Assembly: GCA_965603825.1 (NCBI GenBank)
Contig: CBFDEM010000011.1
Coordinates: forward strand, 744,001 to 808,000
Direction: 5' to 3'
From: Blepharisma stoltei ATCC 30299
Lineage: Eukaryota > Protista > Ciliophora
DNA length: 64,000 nucleotides
Positions within the stretch are counted from its first letter, which is position 1; each line of letters starts with the position of its first letter. Position numbers and translations under genes: made by a program. Under the pieces are notes generated by a model. That model made no database searches, had not been told where the DNA came from, and saw only the letters and a program-made list of their open reading frames with translations. Shown piece after piece: positions 2,411-10,653 of this stretch.

Positions 2411-4861
2411 TTATCCTCTTCTTTCAGCAATTTTATTCAGCACTATTTTGTGGATTCTTAGCAAGTAATCACTGTAGCTGATTTCTCCAGACGTCACATC
2501 TTCCACCATGAACCTTCTTAAAATGAAATCATCCCCTTTCCCTTCAAAGAGCCAATGCAAGGATGGATAAGCTGATGGACTTCTTTTCCTGACCTCATCT
2601 ATAATAGCTAGCACTTTTGCTGACTCATCATTTCCATAGTCATTTAGAGCCCACAACTCAGGGTTTTCGCTCAATTCGTCAAACTGAGGGACGCCAAAAA
2701 CATTTTGCAAAAATTCTTGATCTGCGTTCCTTCCTATGTAAAGTAGCATAACTTCACCATTAAATAGTAAGTAGACTCCATTCGATTGAATATATTGCAA
2801 GGTGCACGGAACTAAGTTAGGGAGGATTAGGAACTCAGCATTATTTAGAGTTCCTGGCTGTTGAGGCTGGACTGAAATGTCGTGCAAACTATAAATGGAT
2901 GGATAAAAGTGCATTCTTGTTTGACGGATGTTCATACCTAATAGTGCGTGCACTGAAAAAAGCCTTGCATCAATTGGAACCCCACTTACTGCAAAAGCTG
3001 GAAGCTTCATAGCTGTGTTACTATAAAGAGGGACCATTCTTAAGGTCTCAGGTACCAAAATTTTGTTTACTTCTCCATCTCCAACAGTCATTCTATGTAT
3101 CGTAAGCATCGTTATCATGCTTGCATGCCATTTTTCTCTAACAGTCCCCACCGCTTCTTCATAAATCGAATAAGCGCTTTGTCTTGCAACAACATTCGCT
3201 ATTGCATCAGCATCTCCCCCTTTAAATATATTAGGGATCATTTTTGTGCTTTTCATGACTCCGTTGAAAATTCTTATAAGTCTTTGCCCATACTGGCTCG
3301 TATAAAGCATTGCGCATTGAACATGCAAATCAATATCTTCTTGCAATTTTGAGTCATGCTTAAGCATAATGACTATAGTTTTATCCGAATCAATGCAAGC
3401 CAGCTCCATTTCGACCGGTCCTTTTCTTTTGAATTTCCCAATATATTGATCAATTGCGATTCCATTGCTACATCTTGCCCTCATAACTGCTTGGAAGCCT
3501 TGTGTCCTTGTCAAAGTTCGGAAAATTTGATAATACATCCGTTCTCCATCAAAGCCTACATTGAAATTTGGATAATAATGCAAATCTCCTCCAGTTTGAG
3601 AACAAAGTGCAGCCAATGAAGGGGCATCAGCATACTGTCCTGAGCATAAGAAAATATCAATACAAATATCTTCAGATGTGCACTCTTGGGCTAAGGTAAC
3701 ATAATTTTCAAGTGGAGCGTACATGGTTTTCTCTTTATCTGTATTAAAAAGTTTAGGGTCTACTCTATTAGTCAGTTTTCCTTTTCCAACAGTGCCAAGC
3801 TGGGAAGTAAAGATGAGGACTCTCCCTCCTCTTCCTTTTAATAAATAATTTTTCATCGCGTCAGCTACTGCCCCAGCTGATAAATTCACTTTAGGAGGTT
3901 GTGTAAAGTCCCAAGCAAGCAGCCTATCCAATAGCCCATCCAGCTGTTCCCGCTGCTCAGCCACATTATAAGTAAGCCCAGCCACACTTTCAGGGATAAA
4001 AGGGTCGTCTACATCAGTTACCAAGATTTCTGAGACTTCTCCAGTAGATCCAATCTTATAGAACTGCATAGAAGTATCAAACGTCATCACTCCAATGCTG
4101 CATCTCTCAGGAAAAGAAACATAGTCCAGCACTCCTTTTATTGATGTCAGAATCTGCTGAGGGAGGCCTAAAGATATAGAATTCGCTGAGATATCAATGC
4201 AAAAGAAAAATAAAGGAGCCATCGGAGGCCGATTTGAGTAGTCTTCTGGAGCGATGAACTCATAAGTCCCAGCCCAAAGCTCAGGTTTGTTATTTCTATC
4301 GTTAAAATACTCCTCTGGTGAGTCTTGAACCAGCCCGCATATATTGCATATGCACTTTCTTCCTCCTTCCACAAATCGAAAATGAGGACTGACAAATGCC
4401 AAACATCGATTGCATCGGAATGGGATTTTATTAAGAATTGGGATTGGATCTTCTCCTGGGCAGATATCAGCGAGTGGGTGCCAAATTGCAGCAAGTGGCA
4501 GGCCTGTTGATTTTTGAGTGCTTTCATCTATTGCACATTGAGTGCATGTAAAACGGAGAAAGCGTGGGGAGGTGACAGCTTGCTCTTTTGCGATAATATT
4601 TTCTAAAATAGGAGGCGGAAGCTGTCCCATAGCGGTGAATTGACCTAAAAAGTCATCATATCTTTCTAAAGGTCTTGGAAGTGTTTCGGTGTGGACTTTT
4701 GCTTCTCTTGGCTGCTCAGCTTGAATCCTTCGTTCGGCCATTGTGTTAGGAAGTTGATTTTGTTGAGGGATATCAGGCTTCGAAGAGATTGGCTCAGCTT
4801 CTTGGTAGAGGGGCCTTTGCAAATGAGGCAAACGAGCTCTATGATCACCTTGAAGTGCCAT
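2411..4861 (-). CDS. SEC24: COPII coat subunit Sec24
   Basis: Zn finger RCNRC...CNIC, trunk/vWA domain (FFFCIDIS), GFQAVMRARCSNG beta-sandwich, helical and gelsolin-like C-terminus. Confidence 0.93.
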   Translation of the reverse strand: MALQGDHRARLPHLQRPLYQEAEPISSKPDIPQQNQLPNTMAERRIQAEQPREAKVHTETLPRPLERYDDFLGQFTAMGQLPPPILENIIAKEQAVTSPRFLRFTCTQCAIDESTQKSTGLPLAAIWHPLADICPGEDPIPILNKIPFRCNRCLAFVSPHFRFVEGGRKCICNICGLVQDSPEEYFNDRNNKPELWAGTYEFIAPEDYSNRPPMAPLFFFCIDISANSISLGLPQQILTSIKGVLDYVSFPERCSIGVMTFDTSMQFYKIGSTGEVSEILVTDVDDPFIPESVAGLTYNVAEQREQLDGLLDRLLAWDFTQPPKVNLSAGAVADAMKNYLLKGRGGRVLIFTSQLGTVGKGKLTNRVDPKLFNTDKEKTMYAPLENYVTLAQECTSEDICIDIFLCSGQYADAPSLAALCSQTGGDLHYYPNFNVGFDGERMYYQIFRTLTRTQGFQAVMRARCSNGIAIDQYIGKFKRKGPVEMELACIDSDKTIVIMLKHDSKLQEDIDLHVQCAMLYTSQYGQRLIRIFNGVMKSTKMIPNIFKGGDADAIANVVARQSAYSIYEEAVGTVREKWHASMITMLTIHRMTVGDGEVNKILVPETLRMVPLYSNTAMKLPAFAVSGVPIDARLFSVHALLGMNIRQTRMHFYPSIYSLHDISVQPQQPGTLNNAEFLILPNLVPCTLQYIQSNGVYLLFNGEVMLLYIGRNADQEFLQNVFGVPQFDELSENPELWALNDYGNDESAKVLAIIDEVRKRSPSAYPSLHWLFEGKGDDFILRRFMVEDVTSGEISYSDYLLRIHKIVLNKIAERRG

Positions 4862-5354
4862 ATTTTATAAATTTCCTAGTTGGAATACAAATCGAAAAAA
4901 TTGATTTGCGTGTTTCTCTCAAATTAATAAATAATAAAGATCATCAAAAATATATTAAAATTAATCCTATAAATTATATTCGTAAATTACAATAAAGGAA
5001 TCTTCAAGAGGTTTTAGCATATGCTGACAACATCTATTGTAGTCTTGAAATCAGAGTTTGAAGTTGAACTAATGCAGTTATTTGATTAAACAAATCCATC
5101 GATAATCAAACGAAAATTAAATAAAAAAATGAAGGTTGAGAAAAGTCTAGATCTCACGTTCAAGCTTCTGATTTAAAGATATATGAAAATGTAAATATCC
5201 GGTATATTTAGCATCACTTTTTTAGTATTAAAGACAAATCTAAAAAAGTAAATCATAGTCTCAAAAAAAAATTTAAAGGTTTTTTTTATATTAGACTTAA
5301 TTGAAGGGCAAGATAAGAAAAGAGCACTAATTAAGCAATAAATGATGATTATTT

Positions 5355-6404
5355 TTAAACTATTGGGTATACTGGTTGCATCTGGATACCGCAAATACCT
5401 TGTCCAGCAACGACTGCAATTCTGATATATCCAGCTTCACCCCAGGCGTCACCCCAAGAGTTCTTAACTTTCCAGTATGGAGGAGAGTTAACCTGGTTGT
5501 ACCCAACAATTAAGACTCCGTGGTCTAAAGCAGTTCCACAGTCTTTACTCACAATTCCTCCCTTATAATGTTGCCAAGCAGCTTGGTCAGCTTCAACAGC
5601 AACTGAGACTGGTTGCTGAGCGACTGCAGCGTAGAGTTGATCAGTGTTATCTGCTTGGACTGCCTTGTAGCCAGAAAGGGTAGCTGCAACTGCCTTTTCC
5701 TTAGTCTTGTTGCAAAGACCATACTTACCAGTGTAAGGGTAGTTTGCTTCAGTTGTAATTCCTCTGTTAGCAATGATGTATTTCATTGCAGCTGTCATAT
5801 CTCCTCCATTGCAGGATTCGTTTCCAAAGCTATATGAGCAATCCATAAGTTGTTGCTCTGATAGAGAAGTCAAGGTGTGGCCGGCCAAGAACCATGCACC
5901 TTCAGTAGACCCAGTAGTTGAGAATGACCAACAGCTTCCGCATTGCCCTTGGTTTTTAACTGCGGTAACAGCTCCTTTTTGGGTCCAGTCGACTTGGGTT
6001 GGGACAGCAGAGACGTCAAATTCAGCAACTTCAGCGTCGACAATTGGTTGGAATTTACGAGGAGTGTAAATCATCTTAAATTCAGCGAAGGTTAAGTCTG
6101 CGAACTCGTTGACTCCAAGGAAATAGGTATTTCCCTGGCCGTTGAAGACACGGACGTAGGCTGAGTTGTCTCTGAAAATCTTGAACTTGCGAGCGTATTC
6201 TTCTTCGCTAGCGTAGAGCTTGTTGTATTTGGCAATGAATTCAGAGAATTCTTGTTCCTCCATCTGGAGTTGGGTAATTGCTGGAGTTTGGGCTGGTCCT
6301 GATAGAACTGCAACGGTTGCCACAACTCCGACGATGGCCAATAGGCCAAAGACTGCCAAGAACCTTTTCTTGGATTTAGTTTCTACTGCGAAGTAACCTT
6401 CCAT
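5355..6404 (-). CDS. Papain-family (C1A) cathepsin L-like cysteine protease
   Basis: N-terminal hydrophobic anchor, I29 prodomain (NEFADLT), QGQCGSCWSF catalytic Cys, LDHGV His, KNSWG Asn. Confidence 0.95.
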   Translation of the reverse strand: MEGYFAVETKSKKRFLAVFGLLAIVGVVATVAVLSGPAQTPAITQLQMEEQEFSEFIAKYNKLYASEEEYARKFKIFRDNSAYVRVFNGQGNTYFLGVNEFADLTFAEFKMIYTPRKFQPIVDAEVAEFDVSAVPTQVDWTQKGAVTAVKNQGQCGSCWSFSTTGSTEGAWFLAGHTLTSLSEQQLMDCSYSFGNESCNGGDMTAAMKYIIANRGITTEANYPYTGKYGLCNKTKEKAVAATLSGYKAVQADNTDQLYAAVAQQPVSVAVEADQAAWQHYKGGIVSKDCGTALDHGVLIVGYNQVNSPPYWKVKNSWGDAWGEAGYIRIAVVAGQGICGIQMQPVYPIV

Positions 6405-7116
6405 TTTATTATAATTGTTTCCCCAGTTGTCATCAAGATTAGCACAACGAAGGGCTTTATGAAATTATTCACATAAAATTGGTAGAATTAATTATGGCAT
6501 TTTATCTTGTCGTTATAGGGATAAAAACAGTGGTTAAAAATGATTTTTAATATTTTGTGACTGTTAACGAACAAAAGACCTGCTTTAGTTTTTATAAAAG
6601 CTATATGATAATAATTTTAGGTGCAGAAAATTATCGAAGGTGTCTTGTTTAAATTAAAATTTTTAATTGATTTCTCAAAATATTCAGAAGCAAGTAATTA
6701 GAAAAATTATATATCTATGTGAGGGTTTAATTATTGAACTACTTATTCTGTGCATCAAAAATTAAAATAATCTAAATAAAACATTTGAAAAATTCCAAAA
6801 GTCGTATATGCATATCATATTTAAATCCTTTATAAAATTTCACTGAATAATAAACGAATTTTAAGCTTTTCAAGTGGCAATGATAATAATGAGTGTGTCC
6901 TTCGTATTAATTATTAAATTCTTATATCCGAAAAAGAAAAATATAAAAGTCTTAAACTATAATAATTCAAAGAAGCAAATCACTTTACATTGCTATAAAA
7001 AGGCTACTTAAATAAAAAGTCTAACAAATTTTTTCTTACGAATAATATAAAAAGTTAACAACAGCTTTTGGCAAATATATCAACTTATTACTTTGTTAAA
7101 ATAATTCAAATATACC

Positions 7117-7121
7117 AAAAA
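7117..7121 (-). terminator. Pol III oligo-T terminator
   Basis: TTTTT immediately after the terminal stem strand AAACCC on the minus strand. Confidence 0.6.
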
Positions 7122-7301
7122 GGGTTTAGATAACCTGTAGAAGCTGTGATCGGCAGAGCCTGAGCATGTGCTCCACAACTGCAGGATATCACCTGGCTGC
7201 GCTCTCAGCTCCTTTGGAGGAACTGAGTGAGGAACCTTACAAAGGTTACTGGTGTTAGGGTGAATGCGGCCAAGACCGGAGAGATGCGCTTGCCAACCCA
7301 T
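7117..7301 (-). ncRNA. Candidate telomerase RNA (Pol III-type transcript, ~185 nt)
   Basis: GC-rich island inside a 1.3-kb AT-rich intergenic gap. Template CACCCUAACACC (7262-7251) is 1.5x CCCTAACA. 5' GGGUU pairs with 3' AACCC, followed by TTTTT. Multiple hairpins and an upstream CCCATAAA element are present. Confidence 0.78.
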
Positions 7302-7307
7302 CTTTAA

Positions 7308-7319
7308 TTCCCGCGAAAA
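7308..7319. promoter_or_regulatory. E2F/DP-like site (TTCCCGCGAAAA)
   Basis: Overlapping inverted TTTSSCGC-like motifs in otherwise very AT-rich DNA, just upstream of the ncRNA candidate. Confidence 0.35.
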
Positions 7320-7350
7320 CTTAAATTTTTTGTTTTTTTGGTTAATTTTA

Positions 7351-7360
7351 TTTATGGGAA
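7351..7360 (-). promoter_or_regulatory. Putative upstream sequence element (USE/PSE) of a type-3 Pol III / snRNA-type promoter
   Basis: TTCCCATAAA lies about 50-60 nt upstream of the predicted 5' end. A CCCATA-core USE at this distance is described for ciliate snRNA and telomerase RNA genes (from memory). Confidence 0.6.
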
Positions 7361-7735
7361 CAATTTTTATTAGATTGATATATAGCGTTTATTGATATAC
7401 AAATGCTATTTTAAATCCAGCAAAAGATAAGATTTTATTTTATAACAAAAGTGATTTAGAGAGTAATTTTTATAATTTATTTTACGTAGAAAATATCAGC
7501 ACTTAATTCATGCAATTAGCTGTAAAATTGAAGATGAATTAATCGGTTCTAAAATTTTCTGGTTTAATCTCTTAGAGCTCTATGAGATTAAAAAATTCAA
7601 ATAGAAATATAATAGCTGCACATAATATATGGAACTTATTAGAAATTGTTCAATCCTAGCAAGGGAAAGGATTATGATGCAAGCGCAGTTATCACAATAA
7701 TTTCCTAAAAAATCATGCATAGTAAAATATTAAAT

Positions 7736-8945
7736 ATGCTCAGACTTGCAAGAAGGTTCTTCGCAGGAATTGCCCCCCAAGTCGAATATCCTATAGGAAT
7801 TAAAGACGTTCAGAACATTGACGAATATTTGGATGCATTAGAAAACATAGAAGAAGGGAAATTTCCAATCGTTGAGCAAAAACTCATTCAATGCTTGAGT
7901 ATTGCTGAAGAAAGAGGACTCTATGGTGAGCCGCCTTATAATATTCTCCTCAAAAGACTAGCCTTTATATTTAGGATTGAAAATAAGACTAGTATGTGCG
8001 AAAGGCTGCTGGAAGAGATCGTAAAAAATTTCAAAGAAAGAGAAAGCCTATATCCAAGCCAGCTTTCTTGCTCCTATGAAACTCTACTTATGCAGTATTT
8101 AGATACAAATATTGACAAAGGTATTGATTTAGCTAAGAAGCTATTAGAGGAAAAGCCTAGTCACATAAATGAAGAATTCGTCAAAAATATGTTAGCGATA
8201 GCTTACTTACTTAAAGGGGGAAACATATGAGAATCTAAAAAGCTTTTATCTTCTCTAATAGCAACAAATCCGCAGCAGCCTGAGCTCTATCATAATTTAG
8301 GCTGCGCTCAGTGGTGGCATCTTTTGTCATTTGAAAAACCAGAAACAATTACTATCAAAGAAGGAGAGACCTATGAGCAGTCTGAATATAGAGCTGCTGC
8401 AATGGAGTTTACAGATTCAGTAGCAAGCTTTCAAAGAGCCATTCAACATTTCGAAGGGCTGCCTGATATTTATAAAATTGACCCAAACAATAAGCTTGGT
8501 TTAAAATCATCAATTTGTGGAATCTCCCTTACAAATATCTCTGAAGTCCATCTTCAAAGCGCAAATCTAGAGGTAACTTAAAATTAGCCTGAAGGAAGCC
8601 ATAAAATGACTTAAATGTGCTTTAACGTTTTATGAAGAAGTTGATAAACAAAACGCTGGGAGATCTCTAGCGCTAACAGGAGTTTTCTTAAAATTCCAAA
8701 AAGAATATAATGAGGCAGAAAAAGTTTTAACTAAAGCGCTTGGGCTTGTGAACGGAGTAATAATAACATAGAGAGGTGACTATAATGAGATCTTTGTAAA
8801 TGAAGTTTATGCCTCAGTTCTAAAGAAGCTAAAAAAGGAAAAAGAAGCTGAAGAATTATTGGAAAAAGCAAATGGGTTGTCGAAGAATTTGACATATTGG
8901 GCAGCAAGAGCGGTCCATCTGCATATTCCAATGTGGACCCTTTAA
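7736..8945 (+). CDS. Helical-repeat (TPR-like) protein with mitochondrial-type presequence
   Basis: Starts MLRLARRFFA, with TGA-Trp at 8228 and YHNLGCA/AEKVLTKAL TPR-like helices. Intron 8757-8771 is clean. The intron starting at 8573 has an uncertain acceptor (8587 vs 8594). Confidence 0.6.
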
Positions 8946-8979
8946 CACATAATTAAGCTTATTTTAAGAGTATGGTTAA

Positions 8980-9627
8980 TTATGACCCATATTTTGGGCA
9001 AAGTCCTAGTCTGAATCCTATCTCTTTTAGATAATTATCTGCTAAGATAATTTGGTTGCCACCTTTTTCTTTCATTGCTTCTTCCAGGCTTTGGCTTCAG
9101 TCTATTCTTGTGTAATTTTTTTCATAATCTGCGTAGAATGCAGAGACATTTCTGTTTATTGACTCAGATATATCAACGCAATCTTTGAAATTATATGACT
9201 GCTTTGGAAGAATATCCGAGATTATTGAGTTGTTTTCTCTTTCCTGTGGAAACTCGCAAGGTTCCAAAATAAAAGAAACTCTAAACAGCTCAATATAAGA
9301 TGTAATCAAGTTTTCAATTATTTGGAGAGTTTCGCTTTCATGACCAGAAGCATCAAGAACTACAATGACCAGCTTTTTCTTGCTATTTGCAACATCTGCT
9401 TCTATGTTTGTAATTGATAATTGAGTATGAGGAACTTCAACTGAAATATTCGAAAAAAGATCAAAATCTGCAGGAGAGCTTGAGCAGAGAGATCTAAGTA
9501 AGGTGTCTGAGGTTTTCCATACAAGGTGGCCACAGCATCCTCTTGATATTAGTGAGTTGATTATGTAAGACTGAGGCAAAGCGAGGTTTGACCTGACCAG
9601 AATAATTAATGCTTTGGAGGCATACAT
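8980..9627 (-). CDS. Hypothetical protein (215 aa)
   Basis: ORF extended through TGA 9097-9099 to TAA 8980-8982. No family recognised. Confidence 0.6.
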
Positions 9628-9771
9628 TATTAAAACAGTAATAATTTTTCATTAAAAAGCTAGCTATGCAAATTATATAAAAATATTAATAAGCTTATAA
9701 AATATAGGTATATTATATAGCAAAAATGAATTTTTCTTATAAAATTGTTAAGATAGCTTAAGATTTTACAG

Positions 9772-10653
9772 TTATAGCGTTTTGGCTGTGACAGTAGGAA
9801 CGATGATCACAATGAGTATAATCAGCAGTGCGACTAATATGCAGCATTTTTTCCATCTTGCTTTTTGCTGATACCCCTTAGCTCCTTCTAGCGCTTTTTC
9901 CGCTTTTTTAACATAATCTGAAGCATTATCCACGTGCTTTTCTACACTATTCAAAAGTTCTCCTTGAGAGTGAACAAGTGCTGCAAGATCAAGAAACATC
10001 CTGTGCATGATATTTATATTTTGTTCAAGCATTTTGATGTCTTCAAGTCTGCTTTCTATATTATTTACCATCTGAATTATTTCAGAGTGAGCTCCTATCA
10101 TTTTCTTTTCAACCATCATTTGGGCTTGTCTCGGATCTTCTAAGCACTGTTCAATCACTTCATCAGAAATATTTTCGTCAACCATTCTAAGCTGATTTGC
10201 TGTTTTATTTCTAGCTGCTTCGGTGAACACATTTTGTGCCTTTTCTGCTTCTCCCAGGGCTTGCTGAAACTGCTTGATCAAGGTTGCATGCATCGTAGCT
10301 CGCATTCTTGTTTCTGTCTCACTGGCGTTCCCACGACCGTCTTCGATTGTTTTTGCTAGGGTTTCTGCAATGTCACGGACTGAGTTTAGTTCTCCGTTAT
10401 TAACATCGATTAATTCTTTGAGCTGCTTATTAGTTTTAACTTCTTGCTCTGGCTGGGTGCATTGGTTGAACTCATCTTTTAAAATTCTTATTTGCTCAGT
10501 ATTAGATCGGACTCGTTCAATAGATTTTTGGGCTTTACGAATTTGGAGCATAAATTGCATGTTTGGGCCTGATGATGGCTGAACATCTGAAAGTAAAATT
10601 TCATGAGAAGGGTTATTTGAAGCTCCTTTAAGTTCTTGAAGTCTATCTATCAT
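9772..10653 (-). CDS. Syntaxin (plasma-membrane-type Qa-SNARE)
   Basis: MIDRL N-peptide, Habc helices, SNARE motif MFLDLAALVHSQGELLNSVE, C-terminal TM. Confidence 0.92.
   Translation of the reverse strand: MIDRLQELKGASNNPSHEILLSDVQPSSGPNMQFMLQIRKAQKSIERVRSNTEQIRILKDEFNQCTQPEQEVKTNKQLKELIDVNNGELNSVRDIAETLAKTIEDGRGNASETETRMRATMHATLIKQFQQALGEAEKAQNVFTEAARNKTANQLRMVDENISDEVIEQCLEDPRQAQMMVEKKMIGAHSEIIQMVNNIESRLEDIKMLEQNINIMHRMFLDLAALVHSQGELLNSVEKHVDNASDYVKKAEKALEGAKGYQQKARWKKCCILVALLIILIVIIVPTVTAKTL

Follow-up and report, generated by a model that had tools for sequence, protein, structure and literature searches.

Telomerase RNAs of heterotrich ciliates have hitherto been predicted only in silico, from a USE (RTCCCWTA) combined with a template (Fajkus et al., 2021; PMC8287931). 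The accessible text of that study names assemblies of Stentor coeruleus, S. roeselii and Condylostoma magnum, with seven more heterotrichs from SRA; it describes the candidates as lacking homology to RF00025, and its RNA validation as covering Viridiplantae candidates. Blepharisma stoltei lies outside the three assemblies, and Blepharisma is likely among the seven SRA species. According to its supplement, the B. stoltei genome paper of 2023 found no compelling TERC in Blepharisma or Stentor and could not delimit the ends of the repeat because the telomerase RNA was missing; Fajkus et al. (2021) is not cited in that supplement (PMC9942806). No report of a B. stoltei telomerase RNA was found in the literature searched, most subscription journals lying outside it. 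The telomerase RNAs of Intramacronucleata (RF00025; Tetrahymena, Paramecium and spirotrichs) are short Pol III transcripts ending in oligo(U), with a template of about 1.5 repeats, a hairpin just 5' of the template, a core-closing helix and a long 3' stem, all features shared with the B. stoltei RNA as predicted below (PMC4993307).

The window analysed here, a stretch of 64,000 nucleotides of B. stoltei DNA, contains on its minus strand a segment (7299–7117) that, judging from its sequence, is almost certainly the single telomerase RNA gene of this species, with templating and TERT binding as predicted functions. This identity, proposed in an earlier note on the same DNA, is supported by a template matching the telomere repeat, a promoter laid out like those of the U6 and SRP RNA genes, uniqueness under a strict USE, presence in a single copy, conservation exceeding that of neighbouring coding DNA in three relatives, and discrete, stand-alone contigs in two samples (X8 and X21). 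In size and layout the RNA is in line with the heterotrich predictions of 2021, as given in the accessible text (PMC8287931). Counted against it are the failure to locate TERT in an insensitive search with four Pfam models and the pseudoknot, which in its classical form can be drawn with a first stem of only 3 bp. The homologues compared are from close relatives, none of them with a different telomere repeat.

The RNA is not categorically new, heterotrich telomerase RNAs having been predicted in 2021, and very probably it belongs by homology to that set, with which it is compared by description only (PMC8287931, available text). Both come from the class Heterotrichea, with the repeat CCCTAACA in Stentor and B. 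americanum; the B. stoltei USE, TTCCCATA, is of the same type as RTCCCWTA, with one mismatch at R; both resemble other ciliate telomerase RNAs in size and template topology, and RF00025 is blind to both. The boundary element is described there as lacking or poorly supported, whereas B. stoltei has a 4-bp hairpin with some substitution support. The pseudoknot is perfectly paired in the published candidates, as described, whereas the B. stoltei form competes with a 10-bp hairpin.

Compared with Intramacronucleata, the B. stoltei RNA has an extra stem joining its 5' and 3' ends, an 8-nt repeat (CCCTAACA) and a 3' domain predicted to be branched, in contrast to the simple stem-loop of helix IV (PMC4993307). 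In its predicted working it is a ciliate-type telomerase RNA that lies outside RF00025 by score: this model (Telomerase-cil; gathering threshold 52 bits) gave no match in the window or the genome at E up to 10, as expected in the earlier note, which held that covariance models of other ciliates would probably miss the locus. It had also named a strong Rfam match to another family as a refutation, and none was obtained for the window in either gathering or E-value mode. ARAGORN and a bacterial promoter scan returned nothing relevant. The Pol III telomerase RNAs of plants (bryophyte, liverwort) are much longer, and the likeness is one of architecture only.

The heterotrich branch split from that of Tetrahymena over a billion years ago. 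If correctly identified, the locus would supply the telomerase RNA missing from a culturable model for which some 47,000 alternative telomere addition sites have been mapped. The published bias of junction permutations would become readable against a real template, and the RNA could be knocked down or its template mutated. Transcript-level and substitution evidence would be added to the heterotrich family.

The GC-rich island and its telomeric 12-mer

The predicted RNA of about 183 nt (7117–7299, minus strand; +1 placed at 7299 or 7298 by the U6 and SRP offsets) coincides with an island of 52% GC, while the remainder of the 1,310-nt gap around it (6405–7714) has 24%. The earlier note had described a GC-rich island of about 185 nt standing alone in a 1.3-kb AT-rich gap, and the elements it quoted all lie on the minus strand where it placed them: CACCCTAACACC at 7262–7251, TTCCCATAAA at 7360–7351, GGGTT at 7299–7295, AACCC at 7126–7122 and TTTTT at 7121–7117. 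The island folds better than its shuffles (z = -2.56) and is present once in the whole 41,464,486-base (41.46 Mb), 64-contig macronuclear assembly.

The telomere repeat of this assembly is CCCTAACA, as the earlier note had assumed, with about 30,000 triple-repeat matches against 0 for the control; among those listed, the matches occur from contig position 2 onward. The perfect 12-nt permutation of the repeat, equal to 1.5 repeats, was confirmed at 7262–7251, where CACCCTAACACC is the only telomere-permutation match of at least 9 nt in the 64-kb window, both strands considered. Chance alone would yield about 0.035 such 12-nt permutations per window and about 23 per genome, so that the 12-mer by itself proves little and has to be judged by its context. 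A search of JGI metagenomes with a 20-mer around the template returned one chance match only, within a bacterial gene (L032).

This context was assessed by scanning the genome for TCCCWTA followed within 60–150 nt by CCCTAACA or AACACCC, a combination that catches all telomeric stretches of at least 11 nt. The strict-USE scans of 41.5 Mb gave 21 loci, all examined; at least 11 telomeric bases were found only at 7299–7117, the runner-up having 10 nt. This locus also has the highest GC content of body among the 21 (0.53), with an AT-rich promoter before it. The relaxed scan (CCCWTA) gave, beyond the telomeres and the 7299–7117 locus, seven interior 9-mer sites; two were scored, both with 9 nt, and uniqueness is complete for the strict USE only, the other five lying outside the scoring.

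These counts bear on a different reading, in which the island encodes another, undescribed Pol III small RNA, its 12-nt telomere match is due to chance and the true telomerase RNA lies elsewhere. The 23 or so 12-mers expected per genome speak for it, and so does RNase MRP, a structured RNA without a USE, because a telomerase RNA of that kind would escape the strict filter. However, only 0.007 12-mers are expected 60–150 nt downstream of the 297 TTCCCATAAA sites of the genome. USE-driven RNA genes are few, and the probability that one of them has a 12-mer at the template position by chance is far below 1%. The match covers exactly 1.5 repeats, is mostly unpaired and conserved, and has a hairpin on its 5' side, and no second strict-USE locus has at least 11 template bases. 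A chance match is thus improbable, and the telomerase RNA reading is preferred.

Promoter and terminator

The USE of the type-3 promoter assigned to the locus, TCCCATAAA (7359–7351), is a 9-mer found identically at -61 of the U6 gene. In both genes ATTTAAG follows 33 nt past the USE start; at the candidate RNA gene this TATA-like box occupies 7326–7320, at Pol III-type spacing, and GGG stands at offset 60. The SRP RNA gene has TCCCTTAAT and, at the U6 offset, ATTTAAG; a G-run stands at its offset 60. The USE takes the form TCCCTTAA at the SRP and U2 genes. The U2 genes are Pol II transcripts; in both of them the USE lies at -56 with a nearer AT-rich box, and ATTTAAG at the U6/SRP offset is absent. 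Since the layout of the candidate locus is common to U6 and SRP and differs from that of U2, the locus is assigned, on the motifs and their spacing, a B. stoltei Pol III type-3 promoter. CCCATAA-N25-ATTTAAG occurs at three genome sites, namely the candidate locus, U6 and one AT-rich site without an RNA-like body.

The earlier note had placed the USE at about -55; the element is present but begins at -60/-61, and -55 corresponds to its centre. The comparison with U6, U2, SRP and MRP genes that it had proposed gave a divided outcome, with U6 and SRP sharing the layout, U2 having the USE with a different box and offset, and MRP having none. For the RNase MRP RNA match (L039, G000:C31:54778-54979, minus strand; 106 bits), no TCCCWTA was present within 120 nt upstream, so the USE is not universal among the structured RNAs of this genome; the MRP gene may use a different promoter or begin further upstream.

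The oligo(T) terminator (7121–7117) is the first run of at least four T in the transcript. This T4 comes 177 nt from the transcript start and is part of a T5, in agreement with an RNA of 150–200 nt. TTTTT directly follows AACCC, as the earlier note had observed.

As a separate observation, TCCCWTAA with ATTTAAG 33 nt on marks heterotrich Pol III genes (U6, L008; SRP, L094; and the candidate RNA), and the two U2 genes (L009 and L010) depart from this grammar in the position of the USE (-56) and the closer AT-rich box. The grammar could be used for finding further Pol III RNAs.

Predicted structure and use of the template

The fold was predicted from the window sequence alone, and the substitutions in L040, a contig of a more distant relative, were scored on that fold; with two sequences the statistics are weak. 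The pairing of GGGUU (7299–7295) with AACCC (7126–7122) proposed in the earlier note was recovered with pair probabilities of 0.5–0.97, as a terminal stem that encloses the entire RNA, the template core having a separate helix. The 5' arm of the terminal stem is invariant in L040 and gives no covariation. The core-closing helix pairs 7294–7286 with 7202–7195 (probability 0.97) and is likely the counterpart of ciliate helix I / P1c. It is predicted in both B. stoltei and L040 and is invariant; its internal loop is the site of a 1-nt deletion common to three relatives.

A 4-bp hairpin (7278–7267), predicted in the two species, ends 4 nt 5' of the template and is a candidate template boundary element similar to helix II. 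Its closing pair changes from U-G to C-G in L040 with the stem kept, and its loop is CUUG in B. stoltei, UUUG in L040 and UUCG in samples X13 and X21. On the 3' side of the template, a conserved segment (7241–7203) occupies the expected position of the pseudoknot and contains a 10-bp helix (7227–7218 with 7213–7204); in L040 it shows a single change in its 39 nt, U-G to C-G within this helix. An H-type pseudoknot with stems of 3 bp and 7 bp and loops of 7 nt can be drawn in both species and competes with the 10-bp hairpin.

Two other pairings in this region were rejected: the hairpin 7250–7230 of the MFE structure, three pairs of which break in L040, and a 6-bp pairing of 7245–7240 with 7216–7211. 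With the MFE helix rejected, the template is left free together with the ten bases that follow it. The mean unpaired probability is 0.73 for the template vs 0.37 elsewhere.

The 3' domain (7190–7129) is predicted to form a long interrupted stem ending in a three-way junction with hairpins 7173–7162 and 7160–7152, and may be regarded as the positional counterpart of ciliate helix IV. In L040 one pair of this domain shows a compensatory change (U-A to C-G), three are preserved after a change on one side, and one is broken. The junction arms are predicted with probabilities of 0.7–0.94 and are invariant, so their support is thermodynamic only. A telomerase RNA with a true 3' three-way junction, a short 4-bp arm and a 5'/3' terminal stem closing it is a tentative and rather unlikely form of this molecule. 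If it were real, an early-branching ciliate would have kept a plant-like or CR4/5-like distal domain, and reduction, not convergent invention, would account for the simple helix IV of Tetrahymena.

Over the fold as a whole, the rejected helix aside, L040 shows one compensatory change, five pair-preserving changes and one broken pair. With that helix excluded, 12 substitutions break 1 pair vs 3.9 expected (P ~0.05, post hoc); with it included, the pair-breaking statistic gives P = 0.22.

In the proposed mechanism, RNA polymerase III would transcribe an RNA of about 183 nt from the U6/SRP-type promoter (USE and ATTTAAG), with polymerase, strand and exact ends as predicted here, and a La-type protein would bind its oligo(U) end. 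The core-closing helix would enclose the boundary hairpin, the single-stranded template and the conserved helix or pseudoknot, with the long 3' domain next, an arrangement that is predicted and has partial substitution support. TERT would bind the RNA at the boundary hairpin. The template CACCCUAACACC (7262–7251) comprises an 8-nt templating part (7262–7255) and a 4-nt alignment part, CACC (7254–7251). The telomere 3' GGTG would pair with this CACC, and the eight next bases (7255–7262) would be copied, adding TTAGGGTG. The boundary hairpin would then halt copying, and the new GGTG end would realign for the next round. The steps of alignment, copying and realignment are modelled on the established telomerase cycle. 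In the predicted register, new G-strands would terminate at TTAGGGTG, with GGTG serving for realignment.

The commonest permutation at B. stoltei telomere addition junctions is given as CTAACACC in the accessible text of the genome paper (PMC9942806). This octamer equals the last eight bases of the template, and the dinucleotides common at junctions fall on the CUAA in the centre of the template. These data are compatible with the proposed register; other registers would contain them too.

The 12-mer could also belong to a telomere-related guide or decoy RNA, the C-rich sequence pairing with telomeric DNA or G-rich transcripts without serving as a template. The pseudoknot, which is not clear-cut, leaves some room for this, as does the outcome of the TERT search: with four Pfam models, TERT was not located in the genome by a six-frame search that ignored introns, was insensitive and left its controls silent. 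PF12009, PF21399 and PF17984 gave nothing real, with one weak match in an apparently prenyltransferase-like frame, and the eight weak RVT_1 matches have no TERT motifs. As the controls were silent, nothing about TERT absence follows; the result probably reflects search insensitivity (tiny introns, divergence). A guide, however, would have no use for a permuted 1.5-repeat with the 4-nt terminal repeat that realignment requires, telomerase-type telomeres require a template RNA, and the genome offers no better candidate. A guide or decoy function is therefore very improbable, and the telomerase RNA reading is retained.

The same search showed that the RVT_1 reverse transcriptase is present in many copies in the somatic genome (38 places), several apparently near-identical, with equal scores and a 496-aa frame. 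They presumably correspond to the non-LTR retroelements already known in B. stoltei.

Transcript contigs, conservation and genomic neighbourhood

Run X8, from the same species, contains a stand-alone 176-nt contig that corresponds exactly to 7125–7300 with empty flanks; the contig reveals neither strand nor ends. From the depth of the neighbouring cathepsin gene (about 24,000) vs that of the spacer (0), X8 is taken, as a guess, to be an RNA-like run. Sample X21 (2015, under another organism label, its run type guessed) has a stand-alone 165-nt contig covering 7125–7289 with three differences. Of the minus-strand transcript of about 185 nt that the earlier note had predicted, the transcript-like contig that covers exactly the island is thus in evidence, while strand is not readable from contigs. 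Both contigs break off at the same base, 7125, three short of where the terminal stem ends; the cause may lie in the assembly or in heterogeneous 3' ends.

DNA contigs of two relatives, X13 (59.9 kb) and X15 (5.2 kb), keep the order cathepsin, island and next gene. Besides the 120–170 nt upstream of the cathepsin gene, their spacer can be aligned only at 7117/7113–7359, from terminator to USE; conservation stops exactly at 7359 on the USE side and at 7117/7113 on the other. Over about 245 nt, the islands differ from that of B. stoltei by one gap and by 5 and 7 substitutions (97–98% identity), whereas adjoining gene pieces are about 90% identical. Among the changes listed for the three samples other than L040, none affects the template.

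L040 is a Logan contig reached via an orthologue (56% amino-acid identity) of the gene at 7715, and appears to read UGA as Trp. The RNA homologue lies at 2619–2375, divergent from that orthologue with one other gene intervening. It is 91% identical to the B. stoltei RNA, whereas orthologous coding DNA of the same run is 65–75% identical and the spacers are unalignable. CCCATAA, ATTTAAG and a T4 are all kept. The template 12-mer, for which the earlier note had expected conservation in homologues, is identical at 12/12 positions; since all homologues are close and 91% of all positions are invariant anyway, this invariance says little by itself. The syntenic search for template conservation and covariation that it had suggested succeeded in L040, with the intact template and the single compensatory change, but the other synteny contigs gave no homologue. 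Synteny via cathepsin and Sec24 recovered no RNA homologue in L033, the paralogous block L034 or the more distant L035–L038, and synteny via the gene at 7715 led to L040 only, L041–L046 being negative. No Stentor telomerase RNA locus was recovered by synteny. In L033, from the species of L040, the orthologous cathepsin gene lacks the RNA element, and the link to cathepsin is not kept there.

The island might, finally, encode no RNA: it could hold a small ORF, act as a cis-element for a gene next to it or be the remnant of an internal telomere addition. Short frames do overlap it (97 aa on the minus strand and 80 aa on the plus strand, with UGA as Trp), and alternative telomere addition sites number in the tens of thousands in B. 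stoltei (bioRxiv 10.1101/2021.12.14.471607). However, the 1-nt deletion, shared by all three DNA homologues and lying near the 5' end, shifts the minus frame just past its ATG, and neither short frame is kept in L040, so the small-ORF reading was rejected. The contig of the island is separate from both neighbouring mRNAs, the orthologous cathepsin (L033) and the paralogous block (L034) are without such an element, and promoter-linked conservation across species is not expected of an internal telomere scar. The non-RNA reading is already largely refuted and extremely improbable, which leaves the telomerase RNA gene as the preferred reading.

The island is flanked by a gene for a papain-family cysteine protease (cathepsin; 5355–6404, minus strand; Pfam PF00112 and PF08246) and by a divergently transcribed gene (7715–8581, plus strand) that served as a synteny marker. 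The latter has a frame open only with UGA as Trp, and its 390-aa database model begins at ORF residue 8. Its function is unknown; ciliate-like homologues form 25 clusters, some with faint TPR matches. In Stentor coeruleus, about 3.5 kb separate a POT1/TEBP-like gene (L038, 15917–17395) from the Sec24 homologue, with no telomerase RNA homologue at that locus. Within B. stoltei, the Sec24–syntaxin region of the window (2411–10653) is matched by a paralogous block (L034; 80% and 90% amino-acid identity), in which the kelch, UBC and L51_S25 genes are kept, cathepsin and the RNA gene are absent, and gene content is reciprocal. This pair of blocks points to an old duplication, either segmental or of the whole genome.
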